Part shown: in pieces, positions 16,343-63,144 of the stretch
Numbering within the stretch: position 1 is the stretch's first letter
Layout of the letters: every line of letters starts with the position of its first letter
Assembly (NCBI RefSeq): GCF_006345805.1
Contig: NC_043001.1
Location: 18,414,001 to 18,478,000, forward strand
Direction: 5' to 3'
DNA from: Octopus sinensis
Lineage: Eukaryota
Length of the DNA: 64,000 nucleotides
The notes under the pieces: generated by a model
Databases searched by the model: none
What the model saw: the letters and a program-made list of their open reading frames with translations, nothing else
Told to the model about the DNA's origin: nothing
Program-made: the position numbers and the translations under genes

Positions 16343-16777
16343 GATTCAAGAAGAAATGAAATTTCAGTATATATGCAAAGAGTTATCTCCCCTTAGGCAG
16401 AATGTGATCATCTCCTGGGAAGGGCAATTAGGAACGGCTTATTTCGACTTTAATTAAACTCGTAATTCATTTTGTTCCAGTGTTTATTCAGTGTTATTTT
16501 TTTAAACATTCCATTGCTTCGTTTTGTAAATTAGTTTCCTGTCTTCTGCAGAAACTCTTAGTTGTAGTTGAAACAATACTCTATATTTTTTTTCACTCGA
16601 AGTGGTATGAGAGAATAGAGTAAAGTTTGCTCGATCACGTAATACCGTTGCGACTGTAAGGGACTTCGAAGCGAAACCTAATTGATTTGATGAATTTATG
16701 AGGTTAAAATACATGAAGTGTGGTGGAAAGTAGAACGTTTTAAGTTAGTAAACTCATGAAACTTCAACTAATATATA

Positions 16778-20487: not shown

Positions 20488-22008
20488 CTGGAGGGAGGAA
20501 ACAAGAAAAGCAAACAATGTTTTGAGGACTTTCTGGCAATGATTTAATACTTACGCTCTTTACTCTTTTACTTGTTTCAGTCATTTGACTGTGGCCATGC
20601 TGGGGCACCGCCTTTAGTCGAGCAAATCGACCCTGGGACATATTCTTTGTAAACCCAGTACTTATTCTATCAGTCTCTTTAGCCGAACCGCTAAGTGACA
20701 GGGACATAAACACACCAGCATCGGTTGTCAAGCAATGCTAGAGGGACAAACACAGACACACAAATACACACACACATACGACGGGCTTCTTTGAGTTTCC
20801 ATGAAAAATGAAGAAATTGGATAGGTAGGAGTAGTGGGGTGGGGTGGGGCAAAAAAGTCTTTCCAAATATAGTAGCTGGAAAACAGGAAAAAAAAACAAA
20901 CTAAAAGCAGTAGAAATGCCCGAACGATTATGGTGGTGCCATGAAGTAAACATGCTTCAGACACACTTGTTTATTCATACAAACGTAACTGAGATGAAAT
21001 ATGTCCTAAATACCTACCATATTCACCAGTGATGGTAGCAGCTATAAGTGCTCCATGAAAATTTGGGTATTTCTTGATTATGGGAAGCAAAGCTTTTCTC
21101 GTTGCTTCTGTTGGACTTAAACCCTCTTGCATCAAGAGAACAACATGGAAGCTGAAAGAACACAATGGAAAAAGGATCATTGGGTGCATTAAGAAAAAAA
21201 TGGTTATGTTGAAATACATTGAGCTGTCAGATAAACTTGTTTCTTTTTTCCCCCTATTAATTGGCACAGGTGTGGCTGTGTGGTAAGATGCTTGCTTCCC
21301 AACCACATGGTTCTGAGTTCAGTACCACTGCGTGACACCTTGGGCAAGTGTCTTTTACTTCAGCTTCAGACCAACCAAAGCCTTGTGAGTGGATTTGGTA
21401 GATGGAAGCTGAAAGAAGCCCCATTGTTTTGGGATCTCCACTACTTTATTATCTCCCCTTCTTCCTAGATCTCCTGTCTGACCACATGTGTTAAGCCATC
21501 ACCATAGTTGACCACTAGCCAACCAAAGCCTTGTGAGTGGATTTGGTACATGGAGGCTGAAAGAAGCCCATTGTGTGTGTATATATATATATATATTTAC
21601 AAGATAAGGGCAAAAGAAAAATTCTAATGCCAAATATGCCGAAAAAAAGACAATAATTGTCAATAAACCATTATAATTTATGTGTTTCCATGGGTATGAG
21701 TAAGTATTTTACTTATATCTCGCGTATTTGCCGCTGAAGAGGGGAAAATTTCTTACGAATTAACCCCGAAATTGGACCAATACGGTAATAACAAATTTTT
21801 TAGAGATTTCGATCGGTTTGTTTCGAGACGCATAAATTATAATGGTTTATTGACAATTGTCTTTTTTTCGGCATATTTGGCATTAGAATTTTTCTTTTGT
21901 CCTTATCTTGTAAATTATTTATAAATTTAACCTTTAAAGGTATTTTTTGATATGCTGGCCATTGATAAAATATTTTTCCCGAAAGAAATTTTATCCTACA
22001 TTAGTTAG

Positions 22009-43700: not shown

Positions 43701-44104
43701 GAGGGGCGGGCACCACAGAAACGGTAAAAGCTGTCATTTAAAACTTGCTAAAATAATATTCGAAATGGTTTATACGATCAGAAATATAATTTCGAAGTAT
43801 TCATGGACTTAAGATGTATTCTGTTGGAATTGTAGTTTATCGTTTCTTTGTTTTCTCGCTATTTCTTCCCATGGGACACACTGTTTATGTATGGCAATAA
43901 AAATGTTAATTTGGCACATAAACGATAATTATTTAAGTTATTACATACTTTTACATTGCAATAAGAAGAGTAAAAGTATTTGTAAAAGTTACCTTTCGCA
44001 TTTGGTGTAATAAAAGGCCACGTATTTATGACTAGAGGTAAGTTTGAACCTGCAGCTCTAGCGACGACAATTAGGAGGAATAACAAACACACCTTCTGTG
44101 ACAT
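20378..44104 (-). CDS. AGA: Aspartylglucosaminidase paralogue B, complete; 8 coding exons, 1053 nt, 350 aa
   Basis: Exons 43993-44104, 32081-32240, 29829-29941, 28474-28586, 26988-27190, 24393-24500, 21018-21151 and 20378-20487. Boundaries are GT-AG and the phases join into one open frame ending in TGA. Motifs NTWPF, HDTIG, GRVGDSP, ATGNGD, RFLPS and GAAC are all present. Confidence 0.97.
21018..21151 (-). CDS. AGA: AGA-B exon 7 ([45 protein letters not shown])
   Basis: Acceptor ttctttcag, donor gtaggt, 134 nt. Confidence 0.95.
21596..21914. mobile_element. Foldback element with ~85-bp terminal inverted repeats around the hammerhead (Penelope-like derivative)
   Basis: 21596-21682 is the reverse complement of 21831-21914 except for one mismatch and small indels. 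Attribution to Penelope-like elements is inferred from the hammerhead. Confidence 0.7.
21728..21788 (+). ncRNA. Type I hammerhead ribozyme motif inside a foldback element
   Basis: Stem I TTGCCG/CGGTAA; core CTGAAGA (21734-21740); stem II GGGG/CCCC; GAAA (21768-21771); stem III ATTG-GAC-CAAT; cleavage triplet AUA (cut after 21782). Confidence 0.75.
23212..23430. mobile_element. piggyBac-type MITE (TTAA-CCCTTTC...GAAAGGG-TTAA); further copies at about 59130-59347 and 59371-59574
   Basis: CCC/GGG termini flanked by TTAA; three similar copies in the window. Confidence 0.75.
23752..23970. mobile_element. hAT/Charlie-type MITE; related elements at about 30056-30812 and 36902-37196
   Basis: TIR cagtgcttttcaa...ttgaaaaccact. 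Confidence 0.6.
24393..24500 (-). CDS. AGA: AGA-B exon 6 ([35 protein letters not shown])
   Basis: Acceptor gtttgcag, donor gtcagt, 108 nt; carries the substrate-binding Arg and Asp of RVGD. Confidence 0.96.
24620..25005 (-). mobile_element. tRNA-derived SINE family 4 (gtggaggcgcaatggcccagtggttagggcagcggact...gtaaccgacggagtgcttcc)
   Basis: Near-identical copies at about 40150-40525(-) and 46888-47205(+, internally deleted); A-box and B-box in the head. Confidence 0.85.
25495..25915 (+). mobile_element. tRNA-derived SINE family 2 with a CORE-like ccttgggcaagtg segment and a (gagtaaa)n tail
   Basis: Near full-length copies also at about 50770-51185(-), 55795-56210(+) and 56495-56900(-). Partial copies at about 1214-1390, 11150-11555, 12105-12245, 20555-20790, 21265-21420, 58755-58915, 62060-62210 and 63775-63930. 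Confidence 0.85.
26988..27190 (-). CDS. AGA: AGA-B exon 5 ([15 protein letters not shown]...[31 protein letters not shown])
   Basis: 203 nt, with the same boundaries as the copy A exon. Confidence 0.96.
28096..28245. repeat. Compound (CCG)n-(CCA)n-(TCA)n trinucleotide tract
   Basis: Read directly from the sequence. Confidence 0.95.
28474..28586 (-). CDS. AGA: AGA-B exon 4 ([38 protein letters not shown])
   Basis: 113 nt, GT-AG. Confidence 0.96.
28675..29051 (+). mobile_element. Non-autonomous Helitron-like element
   Basis: 5' tctatataaa followed by a (ctgt/gt)-rich tract; 3' gcaacgccgggcgatactgCTAGt. Similar 3' ends at about 39855-39878(+) and 22057-22085(-). Confidence 0.6.
29405..29774 (+). 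mobile_element. Second copy of the tRNA-head/hammerhead element (AGA-B intron 3)
   Basis: Same structure. CTGATGA at 29689-29695 and GAAAC at 29717-29721; the left inverted arm retains GAAACGTTGTGTT. Confidence 0.7.
29829..29941 (-). CDS. AGA: AGA-B exon 3 ([37 protein letters not shown])
   Basis: 113 nt, GT-AG. Confidence 0.96.
32081..32240 (-). CDS. AGA: AGA-B exon 2 ([54 protein letters not shown])
   Basis: 160 nt, GT-AG. Confidence 0.96.
32840..33720 (+). mobile_element. Decayed LINE ORF1/gag-like fragment with a CCHC zinc knuckle
   Basis: [14 protein letters not shown] (CX2CX4HX4C) in ORF 33201-33413, followed by an acidic/basic tail ([15 protein letters not shown]); interrupted by stops and frameshifts. 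Confidence 0.65.
34898..35309. mobile_element. Foldback element with ~90-bp TIRs
   Basis: 34898-34989 is inverted at 35220-35309. Confidence 0.75.
37753..37975 (+). mobile_element. mariner transposase C-terminal remnant
   Basis: [23 protein letters not shown] ... [24 protein letters not shown], matching the mariner YSPDLAPSD motif region. Confidence 0.8.
40525..40712. repeat. Long (TA)n-rich microsatellite
   Basis: Read directly from the sequence. Confidence 0.95.
43993..44104 (-). CDS. AGA: AGA-B exon 1 ([37 protein letters not shown])
   Basis: ATG at 44104, signal peptide, donor gtaact. Confidence 0.95.
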
Positions 44105-44554
44105 GATTCAAGAAGAAATGAAATTCAAGTATGGGCTTAGAGTTATCTCCCCTTAGAGGGAAGGTCAGCCATGCAACGAGCTTCGAGGAAAGGGTAATTC
44201 GAAACGACTCCTTATTTCGACTTTAGACTCGTAATTCTTGTTGTTCCATTGTTTATTCTGTGTTGTTTTAACATGTATTTGCTTTGTTTTGTAAATGGGT
44301 TTATTGCCTTCTCCAGAAACTCTTAGTTGATGTTGAAATGTATTGAAAACTATTTGTTTTTCGCTCGAAGTGTTATGAACGAACGGAGTAAAAGTTTGAT
44401 CGATCACGTAATTACCTTTGCGACTGTAAGGGACTTCGAAGCGAAACCTAATTGATTTGATGAATTTATGAGGTTAAAATACATGAAGTGTGGAAGCAAA
44501 TAGAACATTTTTAAAGTTATCAAACCCATGAAACTTCAACTGGCATATATATAC

Positions 44555-44591
<37 letters not shown>

Positions 44592-44716
44592 CTAAGTAAT
44601 TAAGGGTTTAGCAACGATTTGCTCCTTGAATGGGGCTTTTACATGCCGAAATCTACTTGGTGAAATTGATGATTATTCCAAATTAATTAATTTCACCCTA
44701 TATTATTATTGGTAAT

Positions 44717-44762
<46 letters not shown>

Positions 44763-44893
44763 TAAATTAGAGATAAAACCACTATTAGGCAATCAAACAA
44801 TGAAAAACTTAAGCCAATACATAAAATTAATTAATTTATATTATTTTAAATATATATCAAAAGTATTAAAAGTTTAATAAAAGATAATGAGTA

Positions 44894-44930
<37 letters not shown>

Positions 44931-47331
44931 TATACTGTGGTAACCTTCATACACTGACCGCAACATTTGGAAATAGCCTGTGTTTCGGTAATTATTTATA
45001 GTGACGGCTTTTAAGTGAAATTAAAACACTGTATAATATATGTGTGTGTGTATATAAAGTGTGTAAATTGTGTGTGAAACTTGATGTATTTGATGTACTT
45101 TGAGTCGACACCGCTGAGCGTTTAAGTCTTATGTAATACAATTTAAATGGTTGTAAATTTATTTATTATATATATATATGCGTTACATTGAATCTCAAAT
45201 TTGTTGACTGGGGAATATATATGATTCCATACTGAATTTTAAGTTTAGTATGGTATTTTATAACGTGCATATGTTTGTTTATTCCTCGTTATGACGAATC
45301 TTCCCATCTTTGTTCTTGTTACGAAGCTCGAATATAAAACTCAACCGGCGCCGTATTTTCCATTATTAGTTACTCGCTAATCTTCCTTCTTTTGTACAGG
45401 AGGGAGCCCCAACGACATAAAGTTTATTTATCATCTCCATCGTTTTTATATCCGTCTTTTCTCTGCTTACATGTGTTGGTGGATCTTGAAGAACAAGATT
45501 CTTTTTGCCACATGGACTGGACACATTTTATCGCACCACTGACGCTAGAGAGAGATTGTCTGGGATATGAGACGTTTTGGCGTTGCTGGTTCGATGCCGA
45601 CTTATTTGAAACCAAACGTTTTTATATTTTTATATTCCTCACGTTTTAATGGTTCTCTCTCTTTCCCTCCATCTCTCTGTTTATGTGTGTGAGGGTATTT
45701 CTCGATGTGTAAGAGGAGAGGAAAATTGTTTATGTCAATTGTCTTCCTTGAATAGATTATAATGTCTCTCTCCCTCACTCTATCTATATGTGTATATTTC
45801 TGTTCGTGCATACATGTGTGTGTTCGTGCATTTACTTCCAACACCAGTATTGTCACCAAAACAAGCTGAATGTCCAGTCAGTCATACCAAATTGTCAGCA
45901 TCAGTCCATAGATGTAGATTTTCCTCTACCCTTTTTGGAGAATTCTATATTTTATCTGGAGTTAGTGCCTTCATAGGTGAGGGGTTTTTTTTTGTGATAC
46001 TACGGGTAGAGACCATATATCCTTCAGTCATCATCATCATTTAATGTCCATCTTCCATGCATGGGTCGGACAGTTCACAGGAGCTGGTGGGGTTGAAAAA
46101 CTGCCCTAGGCTACTGTGTCTGTTTTGGCAGCGTTTTTTATGGCTGGATGCCCTTCCTAACATCAACCACTCTGTACAGTGGACTCAGTGCTTTTTACGT
46201 GGCACTAGCATAGGCGAGATTAGTTATAGCATGATTTTTACAGCTGGATACCCTTCCAAATGCCAACCACTTTACAGTGTGGACTGGATGCTTTTACATG
46301 GCATCAGCACTGGCAGGGTCACCAAGTAACTCACAAGAATGGAATTATGAGAGGAGCAGGGGTATTTGAAGAGGGGAACTTGTGTGAGAGGGTGAAAGGT
46401 TAGAGTGTGATAAAAAGGCAGAGACAGAAACAGGTGTCTTGCTATAATGGAGGGGACATTGGAAGACGTGATCCAATATTACGGCGAGCTGGCAGAAACG
46501 TTAGCACGCCGGGTGAAATGCTCAGCAATATTTCATCTGCCTTTACGCTATGAGTTCAAATTCCGCCGAGGTCGACTTTGCCTTTCATCCTTTCGGAGTC
46601 GATAAATTAAGTACCAGTTACGCACTGGGTCGATATAACTGACTTAATCCGTTTGTCTGTCCTTGTTTGTCCTCTCTGTGTTTAGCCCCTTGTGGGTAGT
46701 AAAGAAATAGGTAATGTGTATCATATGTGATGTATGGATGCTGAGGAAATATGTCCTGTGTATCATATGATATATAGTAAAGGCAGAGGGTTAAGAAGGA
46801 CATCAAATGTATTACTCTCACCAATCTTAGAAGACTAAGATATCCTTGTTGACAAGCCCCTTCCTCTAGATGTAGCTATTAAATAACGTGGAGGCACAAT
46901 GGCCCAGTGGTTAGGGCAGCGGACTCGCGGTCATAGGATCGCGGTTTCGATTCCCAGACCGGGCGTTGTGAGTGTTTATTGAGCGAAAACACCTAAAAGC
47001 TCCACGAGGCTCTGGCAGGGGATGGTGGTGATCCCTGCTGTACTCTTTCACCACAACTTTCTCTCACTCTTACTTCCTGTTTCTGTTGTACCAGCACGTG
47101 TCTGTGGAGTGCTCAGCCACTTACACGTTAATTTCACGAGCAGGCTGTTCCGTTGATTCGGATCAACCGGAACCCTCATCGTCGTAACTGACGGAGTGCT
47201 TCCACTATTAAATAACATAAATTCTCTAAACACATTGATGGAACATTAGGATTAAGGGTTAGAAAGAGCAAGGCTAGTTGATAATTGTTTAATAAAATAA
47301 TTTAGAAAGTTTTCTTTCTTTTCAGTTAACA

Positions 47332-47511
47332 ATGTTGAAGCAATTGAAAGCCTTTGCCAAAAATTACACGGTGCTGCTTGTTATGATCCCTTCAGTAATT
47401 GCCGTACATGTTGGTTGGTACTATATGCAATTTAATCCTGATTTAGTTGAGCCTGAAAGACAAGAGATTGGGATTTTGGGAAAATTAATCAAGAAAACCC
47501 CAAAAGAATAA
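47332..47511 (+). CDS. 59-aa single-TM microprotein, homologue of the MKKS upstream ORF uMKKS1 (MLKQLKAFAKNYTVLLVMIPSVIAVHVGWYYMQFNPDLVEPERQEIGILGKLIKKTPKE*)
   Basis: Lies wholly inside exon 47326-47535 (acceptor ttttctttcttttcag, donor gtaagt). ATG has A at -3. NYTVLLVMIPSVIAVHVGWY matches human uMKKS1 DYKVLVVMVPLVGLIHLGWY as recalled; no database search was run. Confidence 0.88.
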   Translation: MLKQLKAFAKNYTVLLVMIPSVIAVHVGWYYMQFNPDLVEPERQEIGILGKLIKKTPKE

Positions 47512-47989
47512 ATAAGAAACTCCAAATTACCCAAAGTAAGTTAATGTTTGTCATAATTATTGGAAAAAACCCCAATTCCTTAAAATTTTTTTTTTGTTTA
47601 ATTTGTTTTCTGTCTGATATCAAGTGAGGGCTAAATTATTAAGGAACATGGCCTAGTGGTTAGGCTGCTGTACTCATGATTGTGAGATCTTGGTTTCAAT
47701 TTCTGGACTGGGTGGTGTGTTGTGTTCTTGAGTAAGCCACATTATTTCATATAGCTCTGCAGTCACCTCAACATCTGATGTTTGGCACACTATGCACCTG
47801 TACAGGTAATGTTGATTTGATGGAGGGACTGAGCTAATATGTAACATGAACATTTTAGCACTACAAGCAAATAGTCTCTGTGATGGTTGCTAAGCAAGTT
47901 GTTGTGGGACCCTCATCTATCTTTTATGACTGGATAATCCACAAACTATCGTAACCAGACTTACATCATTTTAAGGGTATTTTAAGAAA

Positions 47990-48545
47990 TTATAATAATA
48001 ATGAAATTATTGTATACGGTGCTCAGGTGCACCACAACTTGTCAAAAGTGTGTATAAAGCATATGCAGTAATGTACAAATGCCTGCAAAGTGAACAATGT
48101 ATGAGTCAGATACATGCTTGTGTGTGTATGGAGGGGAGAAAATCAGGTGTAGTGTTGGCGAATCTCAGAAAGCATGGAAGTTTTGAAGGATGCAGTGCTC
48201 CGACAACTAACAACTGATGATGGCAGTTTGTTCCATACTTCAGCAACTCTTAGCGTGAAAAAATGTTTCCGAAAGTCATGGGAGCTGTACTGTTTTCTGA
48301 CTTTGTAATCATGCCCACGGGTGTTAGATGGGTGGAGTTTGAAAAGGTGCTCAGAGTTATTGTTAGTAAGATGGTTAATAATTTTATGGGTGTCTGCCAA
48401 GTCAGCTGCCAGACGTTGGAGTTTGAAGGTATCCATGTCCAGGGAAGTAAGGCATTCAGAATATGGCAAATGCCTGATGGAGGGTATTGTCTTGGTTGCA
48501 CGTCGCTAAACAGTTTCCAGACAATATCCTGGGCAAGATAGGGGT
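47990..48545 (-). mobile_element. CR1/L2-type LINE 3' fragment
   Basis: ORF 48143-48469 ends TRGHDYKV..RKHFFTLRVAEVWNKLPSSVV..S..SFK, followed by a 3' UTR with an (att)n tail. Confidence 0.85.
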
Positions 48546-49495
48546 TCCAGACTGGTGATGCAAATTATTTCTACTATTTCAACTTTACTACTTTCTAACC
48601 ACAAAATAATTAATCACTCACTTTGGAGCAGCTATGAAATGAGTCATTCTAGTAATGTATTACATTAAAATTTTGATGTGAATTCATAATGAACTTTGGC
48701 AAGTTAGGCATGAATGTCTGTTTCCACCCCATTAACTTAGTTGATAAGGATTCCTAGGTATCTAAGGTTATCCATATCATCTTGTGCAGTCATGGACAAA
48801 CTACAGTCCGCAGGCCACGTATCTTTCTGAATGACACCTTCAACAAAATAATTACCTTGAATTTTATAATAGTGTGTCTCACCTGATGATGAGCCCTGTC
48901 TCATGTAGCCTGCTTCTTGTAAAATGTTGCCCATGACTGGTCTAGTGGTTTGCCATTGGCAGTGATAGTTGATGGGCTGTTTATGTGCATGATTTGTGTT
49001 TTTGATGAAGATTCTGTTTGCATTGCATAATTGTTCAGCCTATGAATTCTCTTAAGTCAATGATTTCTCTTTGAAGAGAGGGTTGCCAAATCAGGAAGAG
49101 ACTGGGAAAGAGTATACAGCCATCTCATCATCATCATTGTTTAACGTCCGTTTTCCATGCTAGCATGGGTTGGACGGTTCGACTGGGGTCTGGGAAGCCA
49201 GGAGGCTGCACCAGGCTCAGTCTGATCTGGCAGTGTTTCTACAGCTGGATGCCCTTTCTAATGCCAACCACTCCATGAGTGTAGTGGGTGCTTTTTACAT
49301 GCCACCGGCACAGGTGCCAGGCGAGGCTGGCAACGGCCACTTTCGGTTGGTGCTTTTTATGTGCCCAATCTGGATTTCATTGAAAACTATTGAGAGAGTT
49401 TCTTCTTAATTATCAAATTGCATTAAGAAATCTTATACACCACTGATATTAAATTTATATATATATATATTTTTCAATTCTAGGATTTGCCAAAC

Positions 49496-49660
49496 ATGTC
49501 TCTAAGAACAGTTTTCCAGTCGGCTGCTAATTGGGCCCATAGCAACAAGTTTGTTTCCTTGATAGTCATCACATCTGTTATGTACTTAGCAACATATCCA
49601 TTGAAAACTCCAAAAATCGCTACTTCTGAAGAGAGAATTGCTAAATCATCACCAAAATAA
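49496..49660 (+). CDS. 54-aa single-TM microprotein, probable homologue of uMKKS2 (MSLRTVFQSAANWAHSNKFVSLIVITSVMYLATYPLKTPKIATSEERIAKSSPK*)
   Basis: Lies inside exon 49484-49663 (acceptor ttttcaattctag, donor cag|gttagt). ATG has A at -3. Gapless W-x3-N-x13-L-x-T-Y-x-L pattern shared with recalled human uMKKS2 (WIRKNWLLVAGISFIGVHLGTYFL). Confidence 0.78.
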   Translation: MSLRTVFQSAANWAHSNKFVSLIVITSVMYLATYPLKTPKIATSEERIAKSSPK

Positions 49661-51288
49661 CAGGTTAGTTACAAATTTCAAAAATATTTTAATTGCTTTA
49701 ATTTTGTATTCAGGGACTGATCTTCAAAAACTATTCTTTATAGATTAGCAAATGAAAATTGTTTATTTTATTTTTTGTTCCTCTTGGCTTTTAAAAATTG
49801 TATGTGGAAATGGTTGTGTAGTTCTCCTTGTAGTATAAGATATGGATTCAGAGAATTGTGTGGCTATCATAGAAAGCTCTTCTAACAGATTTGGCTAACA
49901 GACCACATAGTAATGCAGAATGAATATCCATGCAGCTGGATACCCTTCTTAATGCCAACCACTGGCAATGGCACTAGATATGATTACTAAGTGACTTGCA
50001 AGACATGACCCCTCAACTGAGAGGGGACTAGTATTGAGGGTGGTGGTTTTATTGCAGAGGATGCGAGGTTGAAATATGATGGAGGAGGTAGGTGTGTGTC
50101 AGGGAGGTAATAGGTGGCAGCAGAGACAACCCCTAATATACATATTAGGAGAAGCCAACATAGGAAGCTTCATGCAGTCACTCAGACTAGAAAACAACAG
50201 GGAATCTTCTTCAAATCACAATCTACTGTATTAAACAAAACATTTTAGGTAATGTAGGGATCACAAATTGATCACATCATCATCATCATCATCGTTTAAT
50301 GTCCGTTTTCTATGCTAGCATGGGTTGGATGGTTTGACCGGAGTCTGGGAAACCAGGAAGCTGCACCAGGCTCCAATCTGATCTGGCAATGTTTCTACAG
50401 CTGGATGCCCTTCCTGATGCCAACCATTCCGTGAGTGTAGTGGGTGCTTTTTACGTGTCACTGGCACAGGGGCCTGAGGAGGCTGGCAACTGGCCACAAT
50501 CGGTTGGTGCTTTTTACGTGTCACCGACACAGACGCTAGTCAGGCGGTGCTGGCATATCCATGAATATCTTTACTCATGGCTCTACTCAATTAGAATTGA
50601 CCTGTAGCAGTAAGACTACAGTAGCAGATATAGCTAAAATTATTGCAAAGTATATTTTACTTGTGAGATTGTCTGTCTCACAATATTTATAGAAAGATTT
50701 TCTTAAATTAAAATTATCAATTATATGAAAAAAAAAAAAAAACTCTGTTCTTTAAAGATTTTTCTATACTCTCTCTTTTACTCTTTTACTTGTTTCAGTC
50801 ATTTGACTGCGGCCATGCTGGAGCACCACCTTTAATCGAGCAACTCGACCCCGGGACTTATTCTTTTGTAAGCCCAGTACTTATTCTATCGGTCTCTTTT
50901 GCCGAACCGCTAAGTAACGGGGACATAAACACACCAGCATCGGTTGTCAAGCAATGCTAGGGGACATACAGACACACAAACACACACACGCATATATATA
51001 TATATATATATATACATATATACGACGGGCTTCTTTCAGTTTCCGTCTACCAAATCCACTCACAAGGCTTTGGTCGGCCCGAGGCTATAGTAGAAGACAC
51101 TTGCCCAAGGTGCCACGCAGTGGGACTGAACCCGGAACCATGTGGTTGGTAGACAAGCTACTTACTACACAGCGACTCCTGCGCCTATATGGTTAATAAT
51201 TTTTAATTTAAGAAAATTTTTCTTCAAACATATATTTGCATATAATATGTGTGTGTATATATTTCATGTGTTTATATGTGTATGTATG

Positions 51289-51321
<33 letters not shown>

Positions 51322-51548
51322 TTACATACATACCTCTCTGTCTCTATATATGTATATATCTGTTTGTGTGTATGTGTATATATATCATCATCATCATCAT
51401 CGTTTAGCATCCACTTTCCATGCTAGCATGGGTTGGACGGTTCAACTGGTGTCTGGGAAGCCAGAAAGCTGCACCAGGCCCAGTCTGATCTGGCAATGTT
51501 TCTACGGCTGGATGCCCTTCCTAACGCCAAGATGCCCTTCTTAACGCC

Positions 51549-51579
<31 letters not shown>

Positions 51580-51621
51580 TACATACATACCTCTCTGTCT
51601 GTATATATGTATATATCTGTC

Positions 51622-51665
<44 letters not shown>

Positions 51666-51810
51666 AGTACATTCTCTGTCTCTATATATGTATATATCTG
51701 TTTGTGTGTGTATATATATATATATATATACACAAGCACACGTTTACCTGTCTGTCTGTTTATATATATATATATATATCTGTATATATTTCAGAGTATA
51801 TAATTGAATA

Positions 51811-52801
51811 ATGCAGGAAGTTACTGAAACTAAACTCCTACGTGGCAAACTCACAGACAAGGAAACAGTGCACCAACTCAATTCACTTAGGCATTTATTT
51901 TCCACCACAGTTGGCCCTTATGGAGGCATTAAGCTACTGCGTAATAACTGCGGGGGTCATGTCACACTGACAAGTTCATCATCCAGGTTGCTGGCTGCTC
52001 TGCGACCTACAAATCCTTTAGCACGACTCATAATTGAAGCCTGTTCAAAGCATTCACATACCTACGGGGATGGGGCTCTCTTCATGGCTCATTTTATCCT
52101 AATTCTGATAGACAAAGCTTTGAAACTTGATTTAGATCATAGGTTGATTACCAAAGTAAATTCTTTTCTTCTTGAATTATTTCTTAGTCATTTAAAATCA
52201 GATGATTTCTCCTGTAAAATGGCTGTAGAAATATCTGATGTTAATTCTTTGTGTCAGGTGGCCAGTACGATGTTGTCATCAAAACCATTGTACCAGCTAG
52301 ACGAGCAGCTGCTAAAGTTGATGAGTTCTGTACTCTTAGAAACCTTCATTAGAAGCCTTCCTTCTGAAAGACAGGACAGTTCCTTAAGACCCATCTTAGA
52401 CAATATACATATCATTGGCATTCCTGGTGAAGAAACACATAATTCTTTCTGTTGTGAAGGATTATTGCTTGAGGCTACAAACATCAAAGAAGTGCTGTCA
52501 TGGCAAACACAGAGAGAATCTCTGGAGAATATTTGTACAGTTGTAGTAAATGTATCTATGGCAGGAGATTCTATAGAGCTACCTCAGTTGACTTATGCCA
52601 GTACCAGCCTTAAAGAACTTGAGCAAAGCTTTCTTTCTCATTTGGAGTCATTCTGTTCTGGACTCATATCAAAAGGCATTAGAATTTTATTCTGCCAGAA
52701 AGTGGTTCACCCTTGTCTAAAAGACCAACTGAGAAGAAACGGTGTATTGGTTTTTGATCGTCTTGGTGCTTTGCTGTGCTCCAAAGTTATCAATTTAACA
52801 G
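51811..52801 (+). CDS. MKKS: MKKS coding exon 1
   Basis: Long ORF from MQEVTETK; donor g|gtaatt at 52802. Confidence 0.95.
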
Positions 52802-55800
52802 GTAATTAGTTAATTATTTTAAACTGACATTTATCATCATCATTATCATTTAGCGTCCGCTTTCCATGCTAGCATGGGTTGGACAGTTCAACTTGGGTCT
52901 GGGAAGCCAGAAGGCTGCACCAGGCCCAGTCTGATCTGGCAATGTTTCTACGTCTGGATGCCCTTCCTAACGCCAACCACTCTGTGAGTATATTGGGTGC
53001 TTTTTACGTGCCACCGGCACAGGTCCCAGACGGGGTTGGAAAACGGCCACGGTCGGATGGTGCTTTTTACGTGCCACCAGCACGGGGACCAGGCGGGTTG
53101 TATTAAATTATGTTTAATATGTCCTTATAATAAATGAACAAGAGCCAATGTTAGCTTTGGCTAAGTTTCTACAGTTGGATGCTCTTTCTCATGTCAATCA
53201 CTAGATGCTTTTTTCCATGTCACCATTCCTAGTGAGGTCTCTAAAAGAACAGGAAAATAATAAAAACTCCTTTGATTATGTGTGTGTGTGTGAACATGGC
53301 TGTTGCTAGTACTGCCTGACTGGCCCTCGTGCTGGTGGCACGTAAAAGCACCCACTACACTCTCGGAGTGGTTGGCGTTAGGAAGGGCATCCAGCTGTAG
53401 AAACTGCCAGATCAGATTGGAGCCTGGTGCAGCCACCTGGTTCACCAGTCCTCAGTCAAATCGTCCAACCCATGCTAGCATGGAAAGCGGAGGTTAAACG
53501 ATGATGATGATATGTGTGTGTGTGTGTGTTTGGTGAGGAGTATTTGAAAGAGTGGGGAGGTTGTTTTATGCTGGATGTTGAGAGGTTGAAGTGTGATAGT
53601 CTTGCTATAGAGGAAATAAATGGCTATGCCATATATAATGGTGGATGGGAGTTACCGGAAAGAAGGTAGAGATGCTGGTGACTAGATACCAGACCATCTC
53701 AAAATACAAGGAGAGTGTAAGAGAGGATAGAGGCAGTGAATGGGGGTGGGAGGGTAATAGTTAGAAATAGGGGTAGAAGTGAATGTAATGAGTGAACAAG
53801 AATGGATATGCAATTGATGGGGAATACCAGGATGGAGAGGGAATAGGGTTAGAGAGATAGAAGTGGCTCAAGAAAGAGAATGTATCAGAAAATAGGGTTG
53901 TAGGGGTGTGATGTGCATGAGGATGTAGCGGTGGGGAGGGAGATGTAGGGATAAATAATAGGTGATGCATGATGGGTGATATGGTAGGGTGTTGAGAATG
54001 ATAGTAGATATGAGAGATGTTAAGACAGGGTATGGCAGAGGAAAGAGTGCAATGGCTGAAGGTACAGAAAAGGGAGCAATGAAAATAGTGTGGGGAAAGA
54101 ATCATAATGAAATGAGAGATGGAAGGGGGTTCCAAGAGGGAAGGGAGGTAACTGGAAGTACAAAGAAAAATTTAGATGGAATATGTGTTGGTTTTGCTCT
54201 CAAGTGATTGCCGCAGCAGGGTAGTGCCATAGACAGAGGAGTGATGATTGCCAGAGAATGAAATGTGGGGAATGCTTGACAGGGTAGAAAGGCAGCGCTC
54301 CGGTCAGGTTTGACTTGGGGCTGGATGCCCTTTCTGATGCTGATCACTAGATGCTTTTTTCATGTCACCATCCCTAGTGAGGTCTCTAAGTAACTTGCAA
54401 GATAAAAAAAGAACAAAAAAAAAAAAAACTCCCTTGATTATGCATGTGTGGGGGTGAGTATTTGTGAGAGTGGGGAGATGGGACCAAACAACAACAATGC
54501 TAGCAGTGATTTAATCTTGATGGTCTATACTGTTTAAAATATATTTTCAGATTCCGTTCCAATTAGTTCATTTTCATCAGCTTGCTCTCCAGATCAATTA
54601 GGGAAAATCAGTAAATTCTCGGTCATGGATGTTTTCGGAAAGCAGTGGCTTCATCTGAATCAGATATCCAGCAGTTTAACTACCCTTGTAGTTTGTAGTC
54701 AAATGGAAGAACAGCTTGAAGAATTAAAGGTTGGTTTGTCTCCTTTCTATAAGTGTTAGAATTGCAAGGAATTCTTTCCTTTTATTGATTTCATGATCAT
54801 CATCATCGTTTAACGTCCGCCTTCCATGCTAGCATGGGTTGTACGGTTCGATTGGGTTCTGGGAAGCCATGAGGCTGCACCAGGCCCAGTCTGATCTGGC
54901 AGTGTTTCTACAGCTGGATGCCCTTCCTAATGCCAACCACTCCGTGAGTGTAGTGGGTGTTTTTTATGTGCCACCGGCACAGGGGCAATATTTTAATTTC
55001 ATCATCACCATTTAATGTCCATCTTTCCATGCTTGTGTGGGTTGGCTGGATTTTGTTGGGGTGGATTTTTTACTGCCAGATGCCCTTCCTGTTGCTAACC
55101 CTTATCTATTTCCAAGTAAGGTAATATTTCCCCATGTCTAAAATTCTCTCAGAAGATTGGAAATGGACACTGCTTGTAGTACAGTGACACTTGTTTACAA
55201 CTATCACAAAATGTCAAGGCTAAAAGACAGTAACACACACACACACGAGGACTTCCTTTCATTTTCCATTTAGCATATTCTCTCACAAGGCTTTGGTTGA
55301 CCCAAGGTAGTGTAGCGGGGAGCTGGCAGAAATGTTAGCACGCTGGGCGAAATGCTTTGTGGTATTTTATCTGTTGCTGCGTTCTGAGTTCAAATTCTGC
55401 CGAGGTCGACTTTGCCTTTCATCCTTTCGGGGTCGATAAATTAAGTACCAGTTACGCACTGGGGTCGATGTAATTGACTTAATCCGTTTGTCTGTCCTTG
55501 TTTGTCCCCTCTATGTTTAGCCCCTTGTGGGCAATAAAGAAATAAGGTATTGTAGAAATTTACCCAAGGTGCTACACAATGCAACTGAACCTGGAACCAT
55601 GTAGTTAGGAGGTAAAGTGCCTACTTTTATTAATGTTTATAAATACTTTTGCTCCTCAAGAATAGCTGGACTTGTACTGCTTCCACTTTGGCTATCTTAT
55701 CTCATTAGTCTCTTCTCTTCCTGCCATCATTCTTGTTGTACCTCTTAGTGTTTGTCGTTTATACAACAAGTGACAGACGAAAAAGGGAGTATATAGGTGC

Positions 55801-58800
55801 ATGGGTGGCTGTGTGGTAAGTAGCTTGTTTACCAACCACATGGTTCCGGGTTCAGTCCCATTGCGTGGCACCTTGGGCAAGTGTCTTCTACTATAGCCTC
55901 GGGCCGACCAAAGCCTTGTGAGTGGATTTGGTAGACGGAAACTGAAAGAAGCCCGTCGTATATATGTATATATATATATGTGTGTGTGTATATGTTTGCA
56001 TGTATGTGTTTGTCCCCCTAGCATTGCTTGACAACCGATGCTGGTGTGTTTATGTCCCTGTCACTTAGCGGTTCGGCAAAAAGAGACCGATAGAATAAGT
56101 ACTGGGCTTAGAAAAAGAATAAGTCCCGGGGTCGAGTTGCTCGATTAAAGGCGGTGCTCCAGCATGGCCACAGTCAAATGACTGAAACAAGTAAAAGAGT
56201 AAGAGTAAGAGTAATATGAGAAACTTTATTGCTCGCAACGATTGTTTCGATCTGTTCTGCATTGATTTCTTGTGACGATGCACCACAACCAGTTGTACCG
56301 TATCCCACCCGTGAGGGATCAACTGATTCTTGTTTTATAGACCACAAATTGATGAAAGGCAAAATTGACTTCAGCAGTATTTGTAGTCAGAACATAAAGC
56401 TGGAAGAAATGCTGTTAGGCCTTTTGTCTGGCATGCTAACGATTCTGCCAGCTTGCTGCCTTCCGTAGTATTGTTCATATACACACATAATATATATTCT
56501 TTTACTCTTTTACTTGTTTCAGTCATTTGACTGTGGCCATGCTGGAGCACCGCCTTTAGTCGAGCAAATGAACCCCAGTACTTATTCTTTGTAAGCCCAG
56601 TACTTATTCTATCGGTCTCTTTTGCCGAACCGCTAAGACGTAAACACACCAGCATCGGTTGTCAAGCAATGCTAGGGGGACAAACACAGACACACAAACA
56701 TATACACACACACTTACATATATATATACATATATATGACAAGCTTCTTTCAGTTTCCGTCTACCAAATCCACTCACAAGGCATTGGTTGGCCCGAGGCT
56801 ATAGTAGAAGACACTTGCCCAAGATGCCACGCAGTGGGACTGAACCCAGAACCATGTGGTTGGTTAGCAAGCTACTTACCACACAGCCACTCCTGCGCTT
56901 ATATATATATACACACACGCACGCACGCACGCATGCGCGCGCGGCAGCGAGCTGGCAGAAACGTTAGCACGTCGGGCGAAATGCTTAGTGGTATTTCGGC
57001 TGCCGTTACGTTGTGAGTTCAAATTCCGCCGAGGTCGACTTTGCCTTTCATCATTTCGGTGTCGATAAATTAAGTACCAGTTACGCACTGGGGTCGATGT
57101 AATCGACTTAGTACCTATGTCTGTCCTTGTTTGTCCCCTCTATGTTTAGCCCCTTGTGGGTAATAAAGAAATAGTATTGTTCATATTGCATCTCAACAGT
57201 AACACTATATGGGAACAGACTGTGTATCAATAGTTAGCTGGAAAAGATGTTTTCCTGGGGCTTAAACAACAGTAGCATCGTCCTGTACAGGACTGCCACA
57301 TTCTGTTGGCAAATAAACTTTACTATTTGGTACTGTTACTGTGTATCTCTCACTGAGAGATTTAAAAAGAAGCTGTTTTAAGAGATCAACGACTGTGTTG
57401 CTTGACTATATAGTGTTTACGAGTGGAGAAAGCTTTTATCAACAGCCATTTATTGTCTCACACTGAGGACGGGTAACCACCCAGAAACCATGGTCGTCGT
57501 CGTTGTTAAGCAACAAGACGGGTAAGGGTGATTAGGTGATGGTCTAGGGCTTAGGGGCTGGAGATCCCAGACCTTGGAAAAAAACAAAAAACTTTGGTCA
57601 TCTTGTTGTAGTCGAGGGCTCTTCGTTGATGCCCGATATCACTGGGAGGTGGTCCTCGAAGTTGCTGGAAATGGAGATCTCCAGGTCCAAATTCTTGAAC
57701 GGCGAAACCATGGTCTGTAAGTATTATGTAAGGCTGGAGATGGGAGTGATGAGTGACCTCCCTTGCAAACACTATGTGGTCACAGACTGTTTGATAACCA
57801 GATGGAAAAGATGTTTTGGGGCTTAAACAAAAGTAACATCACCCTTTATAGGACCACCACATTCTGTTGGTAAATAAACTTTACTATATATATATATATT
57901 ATATATATATATATATATATAATATATATATATTGTTGGTATTTTACAAAAGTGTCATAAGTCCAAAACATTGCTTTTTCAGAAAGTGAAAAAATAGTTT
58001 CACCATTCCATAGCAAAACCATTGTACTACACTTTGACAATTTTTGATATCTTGGCATCTGAAGTAGCTGGAGATGTGACAGTTTTACCCAAAGAACCAT
58101 CTATTCCAAGCAAAAATAAATATTGAAAAAAATGCATTTGGCCAAATTTTGACAGATGACAGTTAAGCATAATAGCAACATTAAATGATGATGGTATAAA
58201 GCTTTTAGAATGCCAAATGTTAAAAGAACAGTAGTGGAATGTGAATATTTAGATAAGAAAAATATTTAGAGAAGTGTTGTTTATAATTCATTAATTTTTA
58301 AAATAAAATTTATTAGAATTCTATTTTCTTTTCTGAAATATTACTAACAAAAGATTAGAAGGGAAAATATTGCATGGTAGCAAAATACTTCAGTTTTTAT
58401 AGAGCCACATTTTTAAGATACTAGTATATTTATGAGATCATCATCATCATCGTTTAACGTCGGCTTTCCATGCTAGCATGGGTTGGACGATTTTGACCGA
58501 GGGCTGGCGAACCAGATGGCTGAATCAGGCTCCAATCTTGATTTGGCAGAGTTTCTACAGCTGGATGCCCTTCCTAACGCCAACCACTCTGAGAGTGTGG
58601 TGGGTGCTTTTTACGTCCTACCAGCACGGGGGCCAGTCAGGTGGTACTGGCAACGACCTTGCTCAAATCTTTTTGCACATGCCCCCAGCATGGGTGCCAG
58701 TATGGCGATGTTGTTAATGATCACGCTTGAATGGTGCCAAATATTTTATAGGTGTGGGTCTAGCTGTGTGGTTAAGACAGGTGTTTCCCAGTCATATGGT

Positions 58801-61800
58801 TGGGTTCAGTCCCACTGCATGGCATCTTGGGCAAGTGTCTTCTAATACATCCCAGGGCCGACCAAAACCATCCTCTGTCAATTTGGTAGATGGAAACTGA
58901 AAGAAGCCTATTGTACGTGTGTTGTGTGTGTGTGTGTTTACCCATGTCTTGACATGTGATGATTGTAAATCAGCCTTCTAAGAAACATATGTCAGGTTTT
59001 GGGGAAATATTACCTTACCTGGAAACAGGTGGAGGTTGGTGATAGAAACAGGTGGAGGTTGGCTGTAGGAAACCTGCCTCAACAAATTCTGTCCTATTCA
59101 TTCTGCCATGTAAAAGTAGACATTAATGTTACCAAGCCGGCTGAAACTGACTCTGGCTCTGTAGTACAAATGTCTTGTTTTCATAAGTTTTGAATTAAAA
59201 ATCTTCCACCAAACCTTAGTCACAATTTATGTTCCTAACACTAGCTTAATGATTACTAAGTTATTTTACTAAATTCTTTGTTATATTTAAAATTAATTGA
59301 AAGAAACACAGAGCATCTCAACAGAAATATGGTCGCAAAAGGGTTAAAATATATAATAGAGAAACAACTCTTAACCCTTTCGTTACCAACCCAGCTGAAA
59401 CCGGCTCTGGCTCTGAGTACAAATGTCTTGTTTTCATAAGTTTTGAATTAAAATCTTCCACCAAACCTTAGTCACAATTTATGTTAAGTTATTTTACTAA
59501 ATTCTTTGTTATCTTTAAAGTAATTGAAAGAAATACAGAGCATCTTAAAATAAATACAGTAATGAAAGGGTTAAAGCAACAAGGATGAATGTATTCATTT
59601 CTCTAAATTCCATCAATCATGAAACAGAAGTGACACTCAGTGATAATCCTTCTAAAGTAGGATAAGTTGGTATTTGTAAGCCTGTGGAATGTCTTTGAAT
59701 GGATTTTAAGTCGAGAGAGGTATTTATGTAGTTCATGTTTAATTCCATTGGTTTTTTTATTTTATGTATTTTGTTCAATTTTAACAGGTGAATTGCAACA
59801 ATGTGATGTTAGCATTCCAGCACCTTCTCAGGACACCGGCTGTACTGCACGGTGGGGGCTGCTGGCAGTTCACTTTGGCTAACAAGCTTAGAGTTGAGGT
59901 AAAACTATTTTCTCTGCATTATTTACATTATTTACATTCAACAGATATTTGTCCTCATCTTTGTTCTTAACACAATGTTTTAGCTGATATACCCTCCAGC
60001 CTTCTTCAGGTGTCTTGGGGAAATTTCATACTATTTTCTCTATTGGTTACTTGGAATATTTTCTTATTTGTTCTATCCTTTACTCATCTCTTCAGTATTT
60101 AGTCTCCAACTCATCTTCTCTTGAAATATTTATCATACACTTCCTTGCTTCCCATCTACAAGGATTCAGGGTCAGTCCCACTGCATGACATGTTGGGCAA
60201 ATGTCTCCTGTTATAGCATCTAGCTGACCAAAGCCTTATGAGTGAGTGGATTTGGTTGGTGGAAATTGAAAGAAGCCTGTTTGGTGTATGTGTGTGTGTG
60301 CATGTATCATCATGATCATCATCATTTAACATCCGGTATGGCTTGGACTCTTTTACCAGGGTTGGTAAGCTGAGGGGCTGCACCAGACTCCAGTCTGATT
60401 TGGCATGGTTTCTACGGCTGGATGCACTTCCTAATGCCAACCATTCCAAGAGTGTAATGAATGCTTTTGTGTGCCACCAGCATGTGTGCCATTTGCGTGA
60501 CACCAGAATCTGCCATGACTATAATTTTACTTGGCTTCATGAGTCTTCTACTGAAGCATGGCAAATTGCTAAAGGAAGGTCTCAGTGATAATTTCTTTTT
60601 GGTTGGTAGAAATTGAAAGAAGCTCTTGCTTGGGATGGAAACTGAAAGAAGCCTATTGTACATGTGTTGTGTGTGTGTGTTCACCCATGTCTTGGCATGT
60701 GATAATTGTAAATCAACCTTCTAAGAAACACGTCAGGTCTTGTGGTGAGCTGGTAGAATTGTTAGCAAACCAGACAAAATACATGTAACAGACTTGGTAA
60801 GATCTGGTACTCAAACCCTCCGCCCGCGTTAAAAGTTAAAATATTTAGAACACTGATTGAGCCAGTCCTTCTCTATGGATCAGGGACCTTGACCTTATTG
60901 GCTCCCTTAGAAAAGCAACTAAATGGAACATATACCAACCTGCTCAGAAAGATACAGAACATCAGTTGGAGATCACTCCCAACACTTAGTAACATTTATG
61001 GAAATCTGATAGCAATATCCCTCAAGAGCAGAAACGGCTACAATTTACTGACCACTGTCATCGAGCAGAGAAAAAGGTTATCTCATCCCTATTCTTATGG
61101 CATCCCTCTGGAAGTGTTTTCTCCAGGAAACTGACATTTCCAGGTACTATATCACAGAACTCATGGCTGGATATTAGAGAGTTTCAATGGAGTTCTGACC
61201 AACCATAGGCTGGTCGAAGGAAGGTGATGATGATGATGAAAGGTCTAGGTCATATGTCATTGCCTCTGCGTGGCCCTATGCTTGAAAGGTGCTTCTCACC
61301 TGCCATAGGCATGGGTGCTAGTTACACGGCACCAGCATCAGCCACATTGCCTCTGTGAGGTCACACACACACATATATATATCATAGTTGTGGTTGATGC
61401 TAGTGTCACATATTGTTTCTCATCATCATCATTGTTTAACGTCTGCTTTCCATGAGGGCTGGTGAACCAGATGGCTGCACCAGGCTTCAATCTTGATCTG
61501 GCAGAGTTTCTACAGCTGGATGCCCTTCCTAACACCAACCACTCTGAGAGTGTAGTGGGTGCTTTTACATGCCACCAGCACGGGGCCAATCAGGCGGTAG
61601 TGGCAACGACCTTGCTGTAATCTTTTACACATGCCACCGGCACAGGTGCCTGTAAGGTGACGCTGGTAATGATCACGCTTGAATGGTGTCTTTTATGTGC
61701 CATCGGCACGGAGGCCAGATAGCCGCTCTGGCAACGATCACGCCTGAATTGTGCTCTTTAAGGTGACACTGGTAACGATCACCCTCAAATGGTGCCTTTT

Positions 61801-62423
61801 AAGTGCCACTGGCACAGAAGCTGGTTAGCCGCTGTGCTATTCTATCTATTCTCCAGCATTCAGATTTCTGTGTCAAATGTGATGCTTATTTATTTACATT
61901 GTCTTGAATTAATTGTCTGTTATCTCATAGATTCAAGATTTCGGTGATGTGGTTGTTTATTTTTAGAATGACATTGAAGGGTAGGTGTGAGAGGCTGGAC
62001 CTGACTTTTTCCAACATAATACAGAATATTTGAGTCTAATATTGCTTGCAAAGACCTGTTGAATATTTCCGTCTACCAAATCTACTCACAAGGCTTTGGT
62101 CGGCCCAAGGCTACAATAGAAGATACTTACCCAAGGTGCCACACAATGGGACTGAACCCAGAACCGTATAGTTGGGAAGCAAAATTCTTACCACACAGTC
62201 ATACCTGCACCTATATTGTATGTTTTTAAATGGCTAATAGTATTTTATGATTATTTTTAATAATGTATTCTAGTTTTGGAGAGACCAGTGTCATTGGTAA
62301 AATGGAATTAAAAGATATTCTTAATATTTATTTGTTAGTTGTTTTTTATGCATATTTGCACTGGTGTGATTGTGGTAAGAAGCTTGCTTCCCAACCATAT
62401 GGTTTCAGTCTTATTATTATTAC

Positions 62424-62462
<39 letters not shown>

Positions 62463-62483
62463 TATTATTATTATTATTATTAC

Positions 62484-62519
<36 letters not shown>

Positions 62520-62622
62520 TATTATTATTATTATATTATTATTATTATTTTTATTATTATTATTTTTATTATTATTATTATTATTATTATTGTTTTTATT
62601 ATTATTATTATTGTTATTATTA

Positions 62623-62657
<35 letters not shown>

Positions 62658-63144
62658 TTTTTGCCTATTTCAGGTTTCTGAAAATTTAGAAAGCTTCTCC
62701 AGTAAACTGGATTGTTCCGAGTCCCAGTTATTGCAGCTGTGTGATTATCTATGCACAAGTTTGGAACAAGCTGTTTCCCCATCTTCTCAGCAGGGCAAGA
62801 AATGTTTCACCCATCCTTCAGCTGGTCATCTTTGGATACAGGATGACCATGAAGTTAACGCAGAAAAAACTTGTTCATGTGGTGTGCTTTGTTGTAGTTT
62901 GTCAGATTTGAAACTTCAACCTTTAGAACATTCTCCTTCATTTGACAGATTTTCTAAGAAAGAGCTTTATGGCTCTTATAAACCTCTTGATACAATATCC
63001 AGTTCTGAACCTCCTAAGAAACCTCTTCTAATGGACTGCTTTATTCCATGGCAAACTGCTGTAGAAATATCGGTACTTCTAGCCAATATGGCTCTTAGTA
63101 CCAATCAGTTTATCTTTGACACCAACTGTAAACCATCAACATAG
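51811..63144 (+). CDS. MKKS: McKusick-Kaufman/Bardet-Biedl syndrome 6 chaperonin-like protein; 4 coding exons, 1752 nt, 583 aa
   Basis: Exons 51811-52801 (acceptor at 51794), 54551-54729, 59788-59898 and 62674-63144 join in frame. Motifs GP.G.IK..N..GGHV.LTS.SS.LL, GDGALF, LSSKP, CQKVVHP.LK..L....DRLG, GGGC, GHLW, CSCG and LMDC are present. The exon pattern (991/179/111/471) parallels human MKKS as recalled. Confidence 0.93.
54551..54729 (+). CDS. MKKS: MKKS coding exon 2 (DSVPISSFSSACSPDQLGKI...VVCSQMEEQLEELK)
   Basis: Acceptor attttcag, donor gttggt; phase 1 in, phase 0 out. Confidence 0.88.
59788..59898 (+). CDS. MKKS: MKKS coding exon 3 (VNCNNVMLAFQHLLRTPAVLHGGGCWQFTLANKLRVE)
   Basis: Acceptor ttttaacag, donor gtaaaa, 111 nt, GGGC motif. 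Confidence 0.92.
60797..61240 (+). mobile_element. Decayed RTE-like LINE C-terminal fragment
   Basis: KIWYSN..LKVKIFRTLIEPVLLYGS..LT....LNGTYTNLLRKIQNISW. Confidence 0.65.
62413..62657. repeat. (ATT)n tract of about 245 bp just upstream of the last MKKS acceptor
   Basis: Read directly from the sequence. Confidence 0.95.
62674..63144 (+). CDS. MKKS: MKKS last coding exon (VSENLESF...IFDTNCKPST*)
   Basis: Acceptor ttttttgcctatttcag; ends in TAG at 63142-63144. Confidence 0.92.
   Translation, partial: VSENLESFSSKLDCSESQLLQLCDYLCTSLEQAVSPSSQQGKKCFTHPSAGHLWIQDDHEVNAEKTCSCGVLCCSLSDLKLQPLEHSPSFDRFSKKELYGSYKPLDTISSSEPPKKPLLMDCFIPWQTAVEISVLLANMALSTNQFIFDTNCKPST

Follow-up and report, generated by a model that had tools for sequence, protein, structure and literature searches.

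A probable octopus orthologue of the human leader microprotein uMKKS1, encoded upstream of the MKKS chaperonin gene

The closest described system to the locus reported here is the 5' leader of the human gene MKKS, in which an upstream open reading frame (uORF) encodes the 63-aa microprotein uMKKS1 (LOC128706665; "alternative protein MKKS", Q9HB66 according to PMC11837024). As Akimoto 2013 is summarised in PMC11837024, human uMKKS1 is translated in vivo and is found in mitochondrial membrane fractions, the uORFs repress the translation of MKKS, and polyadenylation within the 5'UTR gives rise to short uORF-only transcripts. The HA-tagged products of human MKKS uORF1 and uORF2 were found in mitochondria (PMC7066179), and uMKKS1 was detected by mass spectrometry (PMC8448870). 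A frameshift in the human MKKS conserved-peptide uORF raises reporter expression, i.e., the repression is partly sequence-dependent (PMC7530721). Most of the human localisation data were obtained with tagged, over-expressed proteins (PMC11837024), and the link of LOC128706665 to complex IV components or assembly factors comes from coevolution and deep-learning prediction only (bioRxiv 10.1101/2024.10.01.615885). Reviews describe uMKKS1 as conserved across mammals (PMC11837024).

Comparable small proteins encoded together with a larger coding sequence, either in its leader or next to it, include MIEF1-MP and SLC35A4-MP (both from bicistronic mRNAs), BRAWNIN/UQCC6 and mitoregulin; they are often single-pass proteins of mitochondrial membranes, and some are respiratory-chain assembly factors. 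The octopus reading frame considered below has no sequence relationship to any of them. Unlike these cases, the MKKS locus contains two such frames in series, in a layout common to protostomes and deuterostomes.

We analysed a window of Octopus sinensis DNA (the whole stretch of 64,000 nt, contig NC_043001.1, positions 18,414,001 to 18,478,000; all coordinates below are those of the window unless a contig is named). The reading frame extends on the plus strand from the ATG at 47332 to the TAA at 47509-47511 (47332-47511; 59 aa plus stop; start context aacaATGt, with A at -3). Its translation is exactly the peptide quoted in the sequence-only reading from which this study started, which had placed a 59-aa microprotein at this site. 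The entire frame is contained in an exon of 210 nt, which we designate leader exon 2 (47326-47535, plus strand; acceptor tttcag/, donor AAA/GTAAGT); a polypyrimidine tract ending in ...tttcag precedes the exon, and both its boundaries match exon joins in the database model P0001, a 79-aa Octopus vulgaris entry named "hypothetical predicted protein" and the only database protein to overlap this region. The description of this region as a clean 210-nt exon in otherwise repeat-filled DNA is borne out: the exon is single-copy with AG/GT splice sites, and a self-comparison of the window finds no second copy of exons 2 and 3, while 46% of the interval 44000-52000 has one. Unlike human uMKKS1, the octopus frame is alone in its exon. 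The earlier designation "unannotated" stands only for the intact frame, which is not modelled; its first 27 codons are used by P0001. Exact-sequence look-ups among called genes found neither this frame nor the second leader frame described below.

The encoded peptide has the build that had been read from its letters, namely, a basic N-terminus free of acidic residues, one hydrophobic segment and a charged tail. Residues 1-12 include three Lys and no Asp or Glu, a single hydrophobic stretch covers approximately residues 13-32, and the tail is of mixed charge. The most hydrophobic 19-residue window corresponds to residues 14-32 (VLLVMIPSVIAVHVGWYYM), with a Kyte-Doolittle value of 1.77; the value for human uMKKS1 at the matching place is 1.83. 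An AlphaFold2 model based on 41 family members has helices at residues 2-11 and 13-33 (pLDDT 88-95) and a disordered tail. Judging from this model, the product is predicted to be a single-pass membrane microprotein.

The human uMKKS1 sequence (MSLRNLWRDYKVLVVMVPLVGLIHLGWYRIKSSPVFQIPKNDDIPEQDSLGLSNLQKSQIQGK) was taken from Suppl. Table 1 of PMC8448870 and the Suppl. Data of PMC7066179, and the human fragment given in the sequence-only reading agrees with the published protein. The gapless alignment proposed there is reproduced by BLASTP, with 15/42 residues identical and 27/42 positive (36.6 bits, E 2e-10 for the pairwise comparison). The Smith-Waterman score of the octopus and human peptides is 83; shuffles of the human peptide give 22 +/- 4.2, and 0 of 5000 reach 83. 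With the hydrophobic block held in place and shuffled only internally, z is 10.6; therefore, transmembrane composition does not account for the match to uMKKS1.

Reciprocal similarity, by which the original proposal was to stand or fall, was found: searches from the octopus side recover vertebrate members of the family, including a RefSeq fish protein. The octopus peptide alone, compared by phmmer with 1.84 billion representative proteins, matches about 17 proteins of 56-87 aa (E 2e-6 to 1e-3), among them the "uncharacterized protein" XP_072772547 of the pipefish Nerophis (E 4.6e-4). A search with the family profile gives 98 matches, most of which are vertebrate proteins about 63 aa long, entered as "uncharacterized LOC128706665 homolog", "PNAS-117" or "MKKS"; dozens of the "LOC128706665 homolog" entries have E values of 1e-10 to 1e-17. 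The same search yields two invertebrate "hypothetical proteins", P0039 of Lamellibrachia satsuma and P0044 of Nucella lapillus. A word-indexed protein search with the single octopus peptide had returned P0001 as its only match; the exhaustive HMMER search found more. The octopus peptide, human uMKKS1 and uMKKS2, and the family profile were also compared with the Pfam, NCBIfam and PDB collections, with no meaningful match.

In an alignment of 41 sequences, Val14 and Val17 are almost constant and His26 and Trp29 entirely so; the latter two are also invariant in an alignment of 19 sequences. The motif H-x-G-W-Y, of which they are a part, is 70-90% conserved and lies inside the transmembrane helix. 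The human and octopus proteins are alike in length, in their location in the MKKS 5' leader on the same strand, in the basic N-terminus, in the single hydrophobic helix with Y-x-V-L-x-V-M-x-P ... H-x-G-W-Y followed by Pro, and in being succeeded by a second uORF of membrane type. The C-terminal tails are unrelated: octopus and the other spiralians have Q-F-N-P-x-(L/F)-V ... G, whereas vertebrates have K-S-x-P-x-F-Q-x-P. All the features of sequence and position by which the family is recognised are thus present, which supports the assignment of the 59-aa frame as the octopus orthologue of uMKKS1.

The positional part of this assignment depends on the gene downstream. The ORF 51811-52809 (332 aa) encodes a TCP-1/cpn60 domain (Pfam Cpn60_TCP1, 4.4e-34), and its closest named relatives are the McKusick-Kaufman/Bardet-Biedl chaperonins of Argonauta hians (75% identity) and Xenopus. 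The MKKS exons were mapped by tblastn with the Argonauta protein, and the whole coding sequence occupies 51811-63144 on the plus strand in four exons. The first (51795-52801) is defined by the Cpn60_TCP1 match and splice sites and has its start codon at 51811 in the context aataATGc; it is followed by exons at 54544-54735 and 59785-59901, both with approximate bounds, and by the last coding exon, through the stop codon, at 62671-63144, with an approximate 5' bound. The microprotein exon is located 4.3 kb upstream of the MKKS start and on the same strand, so that the octopus frame occupies the position that uMKKS1 has in the human gene.

Long simple repeats adjoin the MKKS exons: an ATT/CTT-type run at 62263-62670 (plus strand), which reads as poly-Ile/Leu, precedes the last coding exon, and TA/CA microsatellites at 51440-51790 reach the acceptor of the first one. 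Interspersed repeat copies are scattered across the window on both strands. A tRNA-like stretch at 47650-47720 was considered and set aside; no tRNA is predicted there by ARAGORN, and the stretch lacks a close second copy.

Between the microprotein exon and MKKS lies leader exon 3 (49484-49663, plus strand, 180 nt; acceptor ctag/, donor CAG/GTTAGT), which contains a second uORF, and the junction of exons 2 and 3 reproduces the P0001 residues ...ITQ-R-FAKHV. In the spliced leader, the stop codon of the first uORF (uORF1) is separated from the AUG of the second (uORF2) by 36 nt, and the stop codon of uORF2 from the AUG of MKKS by 19 nt; all three AUGs have A at -3. A putative non-coding exon 1 is placed at 44105-44193 (plus strand); its 3' end, before GTAATT at 44193, is firm only as a junction of P0001, the N-terminus of which maps to 44131-44190 and joins 47326 in frame. 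We infer the splicing of the octopus leader from the splice sites and P0001, and exon 1 from this automatic model alone. The block 43986-44110, which is conserved with Argonauta, was examined as exon 1 or the promoter of MKKS and rejected, since it proved to be the initial coding exon of a minus-strand Asparaginase_2-family gene; exon 1 is therefore drawn from P0001 only. The putative exon 1 also contains an ATG at 44131 (44131-44193, plus strand), which the splice joins to uORF1 in the same frame and which would give an 82-aa form with the N-terminus of P0001. As a normal start it was rejected: it is not conserved in Argonauta and may precede the real transcription start.

The neighbouring gene is Asparaginase_2/aspartylglucosaminidase-like. 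Its first exon, which encodes a signal peptide (43859-44104, minus strand), and the MKKS leader are arranged head-to-head, and Argonauta has the same arrangement. A segment of about 600 nt comprising this exon and the shared promoter region is duplicated 28 kb away (43810-44398 versus 16039-16629, 75% identity); the duplicate copy of the first exon is at 16166-16342 (minus strand), and a later exon of the Asparaginase_2 family is at 20971-21306 (minus strand).

The earlier reading had staked its proposal on coding-type conservation among cephalopods as well, and it was observed. In the genome of Argonauta hians (contig L001), a 59-codon frame with the same stop codon is present at 6945-7124 and is 71% identical to that of octopus; the second frame (54 codons) is at 8817-8981, and MKKS starts at 10001. 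By the Nei-Gojobori method, dN between the octopus and Argonauta uORF1 is 0.157 and dS is 1.01 (omega 0.155), and the differences by codon position are 14/3/23. For uORF2, omega is 0.166, and the first MKKS exon gives 0.11. Exon 2 and both its splice sites are kept in Argonauta, and the flanking introns have diverged.

Direct evidence in a cephalopod is provided by larval RNA-seq contigs of Sepia esculenta (the runs were assigned to this species through the accession list of PMC10571815), in which a uMKKS1-like frame of 58 aa, a second frame of 50 aa and MKKS (589-595 aa, 43% identical to octopus MKKS) are found on one mRNA. The Sepia spacers are 54 nt and 18 nt (contig L005). The annelid Lamellibrachia has an intact uMKKS1-like frame of 55 codons in its own exon, a second frame of 56 codons, and MKKS downstream; in the gastropod Nucella, the model P0044 combines uMKKS1-like and uORF2-like sequences in one protein. 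Xenopus tropicalis has a uMKKS1-like frame of 64 aa, a second frame of 51 aa, which is clearly uMKKS2 by comparison with human, and then MKKS. The same order of uORF and MKKS is found in further transcripts or contigs (L006, L011 and L014), and a uMKKS1-like frame is linked to MKKS in five or more lineages.

One of these contigs, L006, comes from an activated-sludge wastewater metagenome and belongs to a eukaryote. It carries a uMKKS1-like frame at 1022-1222 and an intron-less MKKS-like frame of 517 aa at 1244-2797; the former stops 21 nt before the latter, with no second uORF between them. In the thrips Megalurothrips usitatus (L016, about 9588-9800, plus strand), an open frame (...FVGYLGLMHYVWAKLQESPLVNEGQR...) is found about 400 nt upstream of an MKKS-like gene. 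It scores 14.4 bits against the uMKKS1 HMM (E 1.3e-4 among 102 fragments) and is without an ATG; the frame, perhaps spliced or with a non-AUG start, hints that the family may extend to insects.

The second frame of the octopus leader (49496-49660, plus strand; 54 aa, MSLRTVFQSAANWAHSNKFVSLIVITSVMYLATYPLKTPKIATSEERIAKSSPK) has one hydrophobic helix and corresponds to uMKKS2 in position. Its conservation extends to Argonauta, Sepia, Nucella and Lamellibrachia, among which residues W13, K18, S21, Y30, P35, P39, T43 and R47 do not vary. Human uMKKS2 (50 aa) is likewise placed between uMKKS1 and the MKKS start, and the two are alike in build: each starts with a basic, Trp-containing N-terminus, continues with one hydrophobic helix and ends in a polar tail. 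The agreement is one of position and architecture only, and the similarity is not significant: comparison of octopus uORF2 with vertebrate uMKKS2 gives E 0.012 with a probability of 3.6% in hhalign and a Smith-Waterman z of 0.7, and the HMM of spiralian second frames scores 0.3 bits against human uMKKS2. The uMKKS1-family HMM gives human uMKKS2 a score of 14.5 bits, which only 1 of 2000 block-preserving shuffles reaches; Xenopus uMKKS2 (L013, 9642-9797) scores 8.4 bits against the same HMM, and vertebrate uMKKS2 contains ...ISFIGVHLGTYFLQ.... Because human uMKKS2 weakly resembles the uMKKS1 family, the spiralian and vertebrate second frames may not be orthologous. Vertebrate uMKKS2 may have arisen from uMKKS1 by tandem duplication and divergence, and the second frame of spiralians may constitute a distinct family.

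We consider it highly probable that the 59-aa frame is the octopus uMKKS1 orthologue in the MKKS/BBS6 leader and encodes a mitochondrial-membrane microprotein, the translation of which also limits that of MKKS. According to this proposal, the first conserved start encountered by scanning ribosomes would be the AUG of uORF1, with its A at -3, and translation from it would yield a protein of about 60 aa, with a short basic N-terminus, one transmembrane helix bearing His26 and Trp29, and a charged tail of variable sequence. Given its homology to human uMKKS1, the octopus product most likely inserts into a mitochondrial membrane. Ribosomes that have passed uORF1 and the 54 codons of uORF2 would have to reinitiate within 36 nt and 19 nt; for this reason, both uORFs would also throttle the translation of the MKKS chaperonin, as in the human leader. 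A dual role is thus presumed in octopus, with the microprotein acting in the mitochondrial membrane and the translation of the two uORFs limiting the number of ribosomes at the MKKS AUG. The geometry of the octopus leader, i.e., the A at -3 of three AUGs and the two spacers, is compatible with repression of the human type, which is itself known from human reporters only.

Translation, localisation and repression were demonstrated for human uMKKS1 only; for octopus, we infer translation, mitochondrial targeting, MKKS repression and the exact transcription start. Points against the proposal are the charged tail, which lacks conservation between octopus and vertebrates, and the N-terminus of 12 residues, which is too short for a classical presequence.

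The alternative that survives best is that a separate short transcript, terminated at a poly(A) site immediately past the frame, is the main source of the microprotein, which would then in effect be a separate gene sharing the MKKS promoter. An AATAAA hexamer (47507-47512, plus strand) overlaps the stop codon of uORF1, could serve as the poly(A) signal of such a uORF-only transcript, and is kept across the stop codon in Argonauta (GAATAAAT; L001, about 7119-7124). The short transcripts of human MKKS (Akimoto 2013, as summarised in PMC11837024) speak for the same possibility. However, the hexamer is located 24 nt ahead of the conserved splice donor, and nearly every Sepia contig with uORF1 is 2-5 kb long and includes MKKS. 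As the main source of the protein, a short transcript therefore seems unlikely to us, while still deserving attention; it complements the explanation by a uMKKS1 orthologue in the MKKS leader and does not replace it.

It could also be supposed that uORF1 acts purely in cis, as a conserved-peptide uORF whose nascent chain stalls or slows ribosomes for the control of MKKS, and that the released peptide is functionless. The effect of the frameshift in the human reporter (PMC7530721) agrees with this, as do the short spacers, which are of similar size in octopus and Sepia. Such a mechanism would usually involve C-terminal residues acting in the exit tunnel, but the conservation is found in the hydrophobic helix with its invariant His and Trp; moreover, the human product has been detected by mass spectrometry and is mitochondrial (PMC8448870, PMC7066179 and the summary in PMC11837024). 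We regard a purely cis-acting role as improbable, although cis and trans roles of uORF1 can coexist and are not mutually exclusive.

Even less can be said for the idea that the frame forms just the beginning of a longer coding sequence assembled by splicing to downstream leader exons, which is how P0001 of octopus and P0044 of Nucella present it; we assign this reading a very small probability. Two automatic annotations do make such fusions. P0001 consists of an upstream exon, codons 1-27 of uORF1 and an out-of-frame continuation into the next exon; it requires an invented intron inside exon 2, which removes the invariant Trp29 and the G-W-Y of the motif and keeps His26 only. In contrast, the full frame of 59 codons with its stop is kept in Argonauta, and Sepia mRNAs show two separate frames, each with a stop of its own. 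The Lamellibrachia satsuma model P0039 (L015, 10001-11316) likewise overlooks an intact 55-codon frame. Taken together, the three automatic models (P0001, P0044 and P0039) evade the microprotein stops by invented introns or by fusion of uORF1 and uORF2, and intact short frames are present in the DNA of the octopus window and of Lamellibrachia L015. Exact-sequence look-ups of octopus uORF2 and Nucella P0044 found no record. Finally, a chance frame resembling uMKKS1 through shared transmembrane composition is regarded as refuted: short hydrophobic peptides often match spuriously and no Pfam, NCBIfam or PDB family serves as an anchor here, but none of the 5000 shuffles reaches the observed score, even with the hydrophobic block preserved, and there is purifying selection, significance of the matches against whole libraries, and a kept position upstream of MKKS in many lineages.

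The uMKKS1 orthologues ahead of MKKS in octopus, argonaut, cuttlefish, gastropod and annelid indicate that the linkage already existed in the common ancestor of protostomes and deuterostomes. The multi-ORF MKKS leader thus appears, from these comparisons, to predate the protostome-deuterostome split, and to be at least as old as the mollusc-vertebrate ancestor. We did not find this age stated in the texts consulted; the taxonomic ranges that the ESUCA survey (Takahashi et al. 2020, PMC7530721) tabulates for the MKKS uORF may already record it. The linkage was kept despite large changes in intron structure, which argues that the coupling itself, and not the peptide alone, has been selected.

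A further-reaching version is offered tentatively, and we hold it to be somewhat more doubtful than probable: an ancestral bilaterian tricistronic gene would have kept two single-pass membrane microproteins together with the ciliary chaperonin MKKS on a shared mRNA for over 500 million years (in molluscs, annelids, vertebrates and possibly insects), with the spiralian uORF2 (W-A-x-x-N-K-F-V-S-L ... Y-x-A-T-Y-P ... T-S-x-E-R) as an undescribed family and vertebrate uMKKS2 as a diverged copy of uMKKS1. If so, a mitochondrial microprotein, possibly linked to complex IV, would be in obligatory regulatory or functional coupling with BBSome assembly.

The alignment of diverse sequences with the invariant His and Trp can serve the prediction of structure and interactions, and the invertebrate orthologues offer models for the study of function. 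The finding flags three mis-modelled proteins (Octopus P0001, Nucella P0044 and Lamellibrachia P0039), and it supports the annotation of microprotein frames in cephalopod genomes. Few uORF products have been demonstrated as genuine proteins in human cells, and uMKKS1 is among them. MKKS is a cilia-disease gene, and ahead of it on the same mRNA both human and, as we presume, octopus encode a tiny membrane protein.
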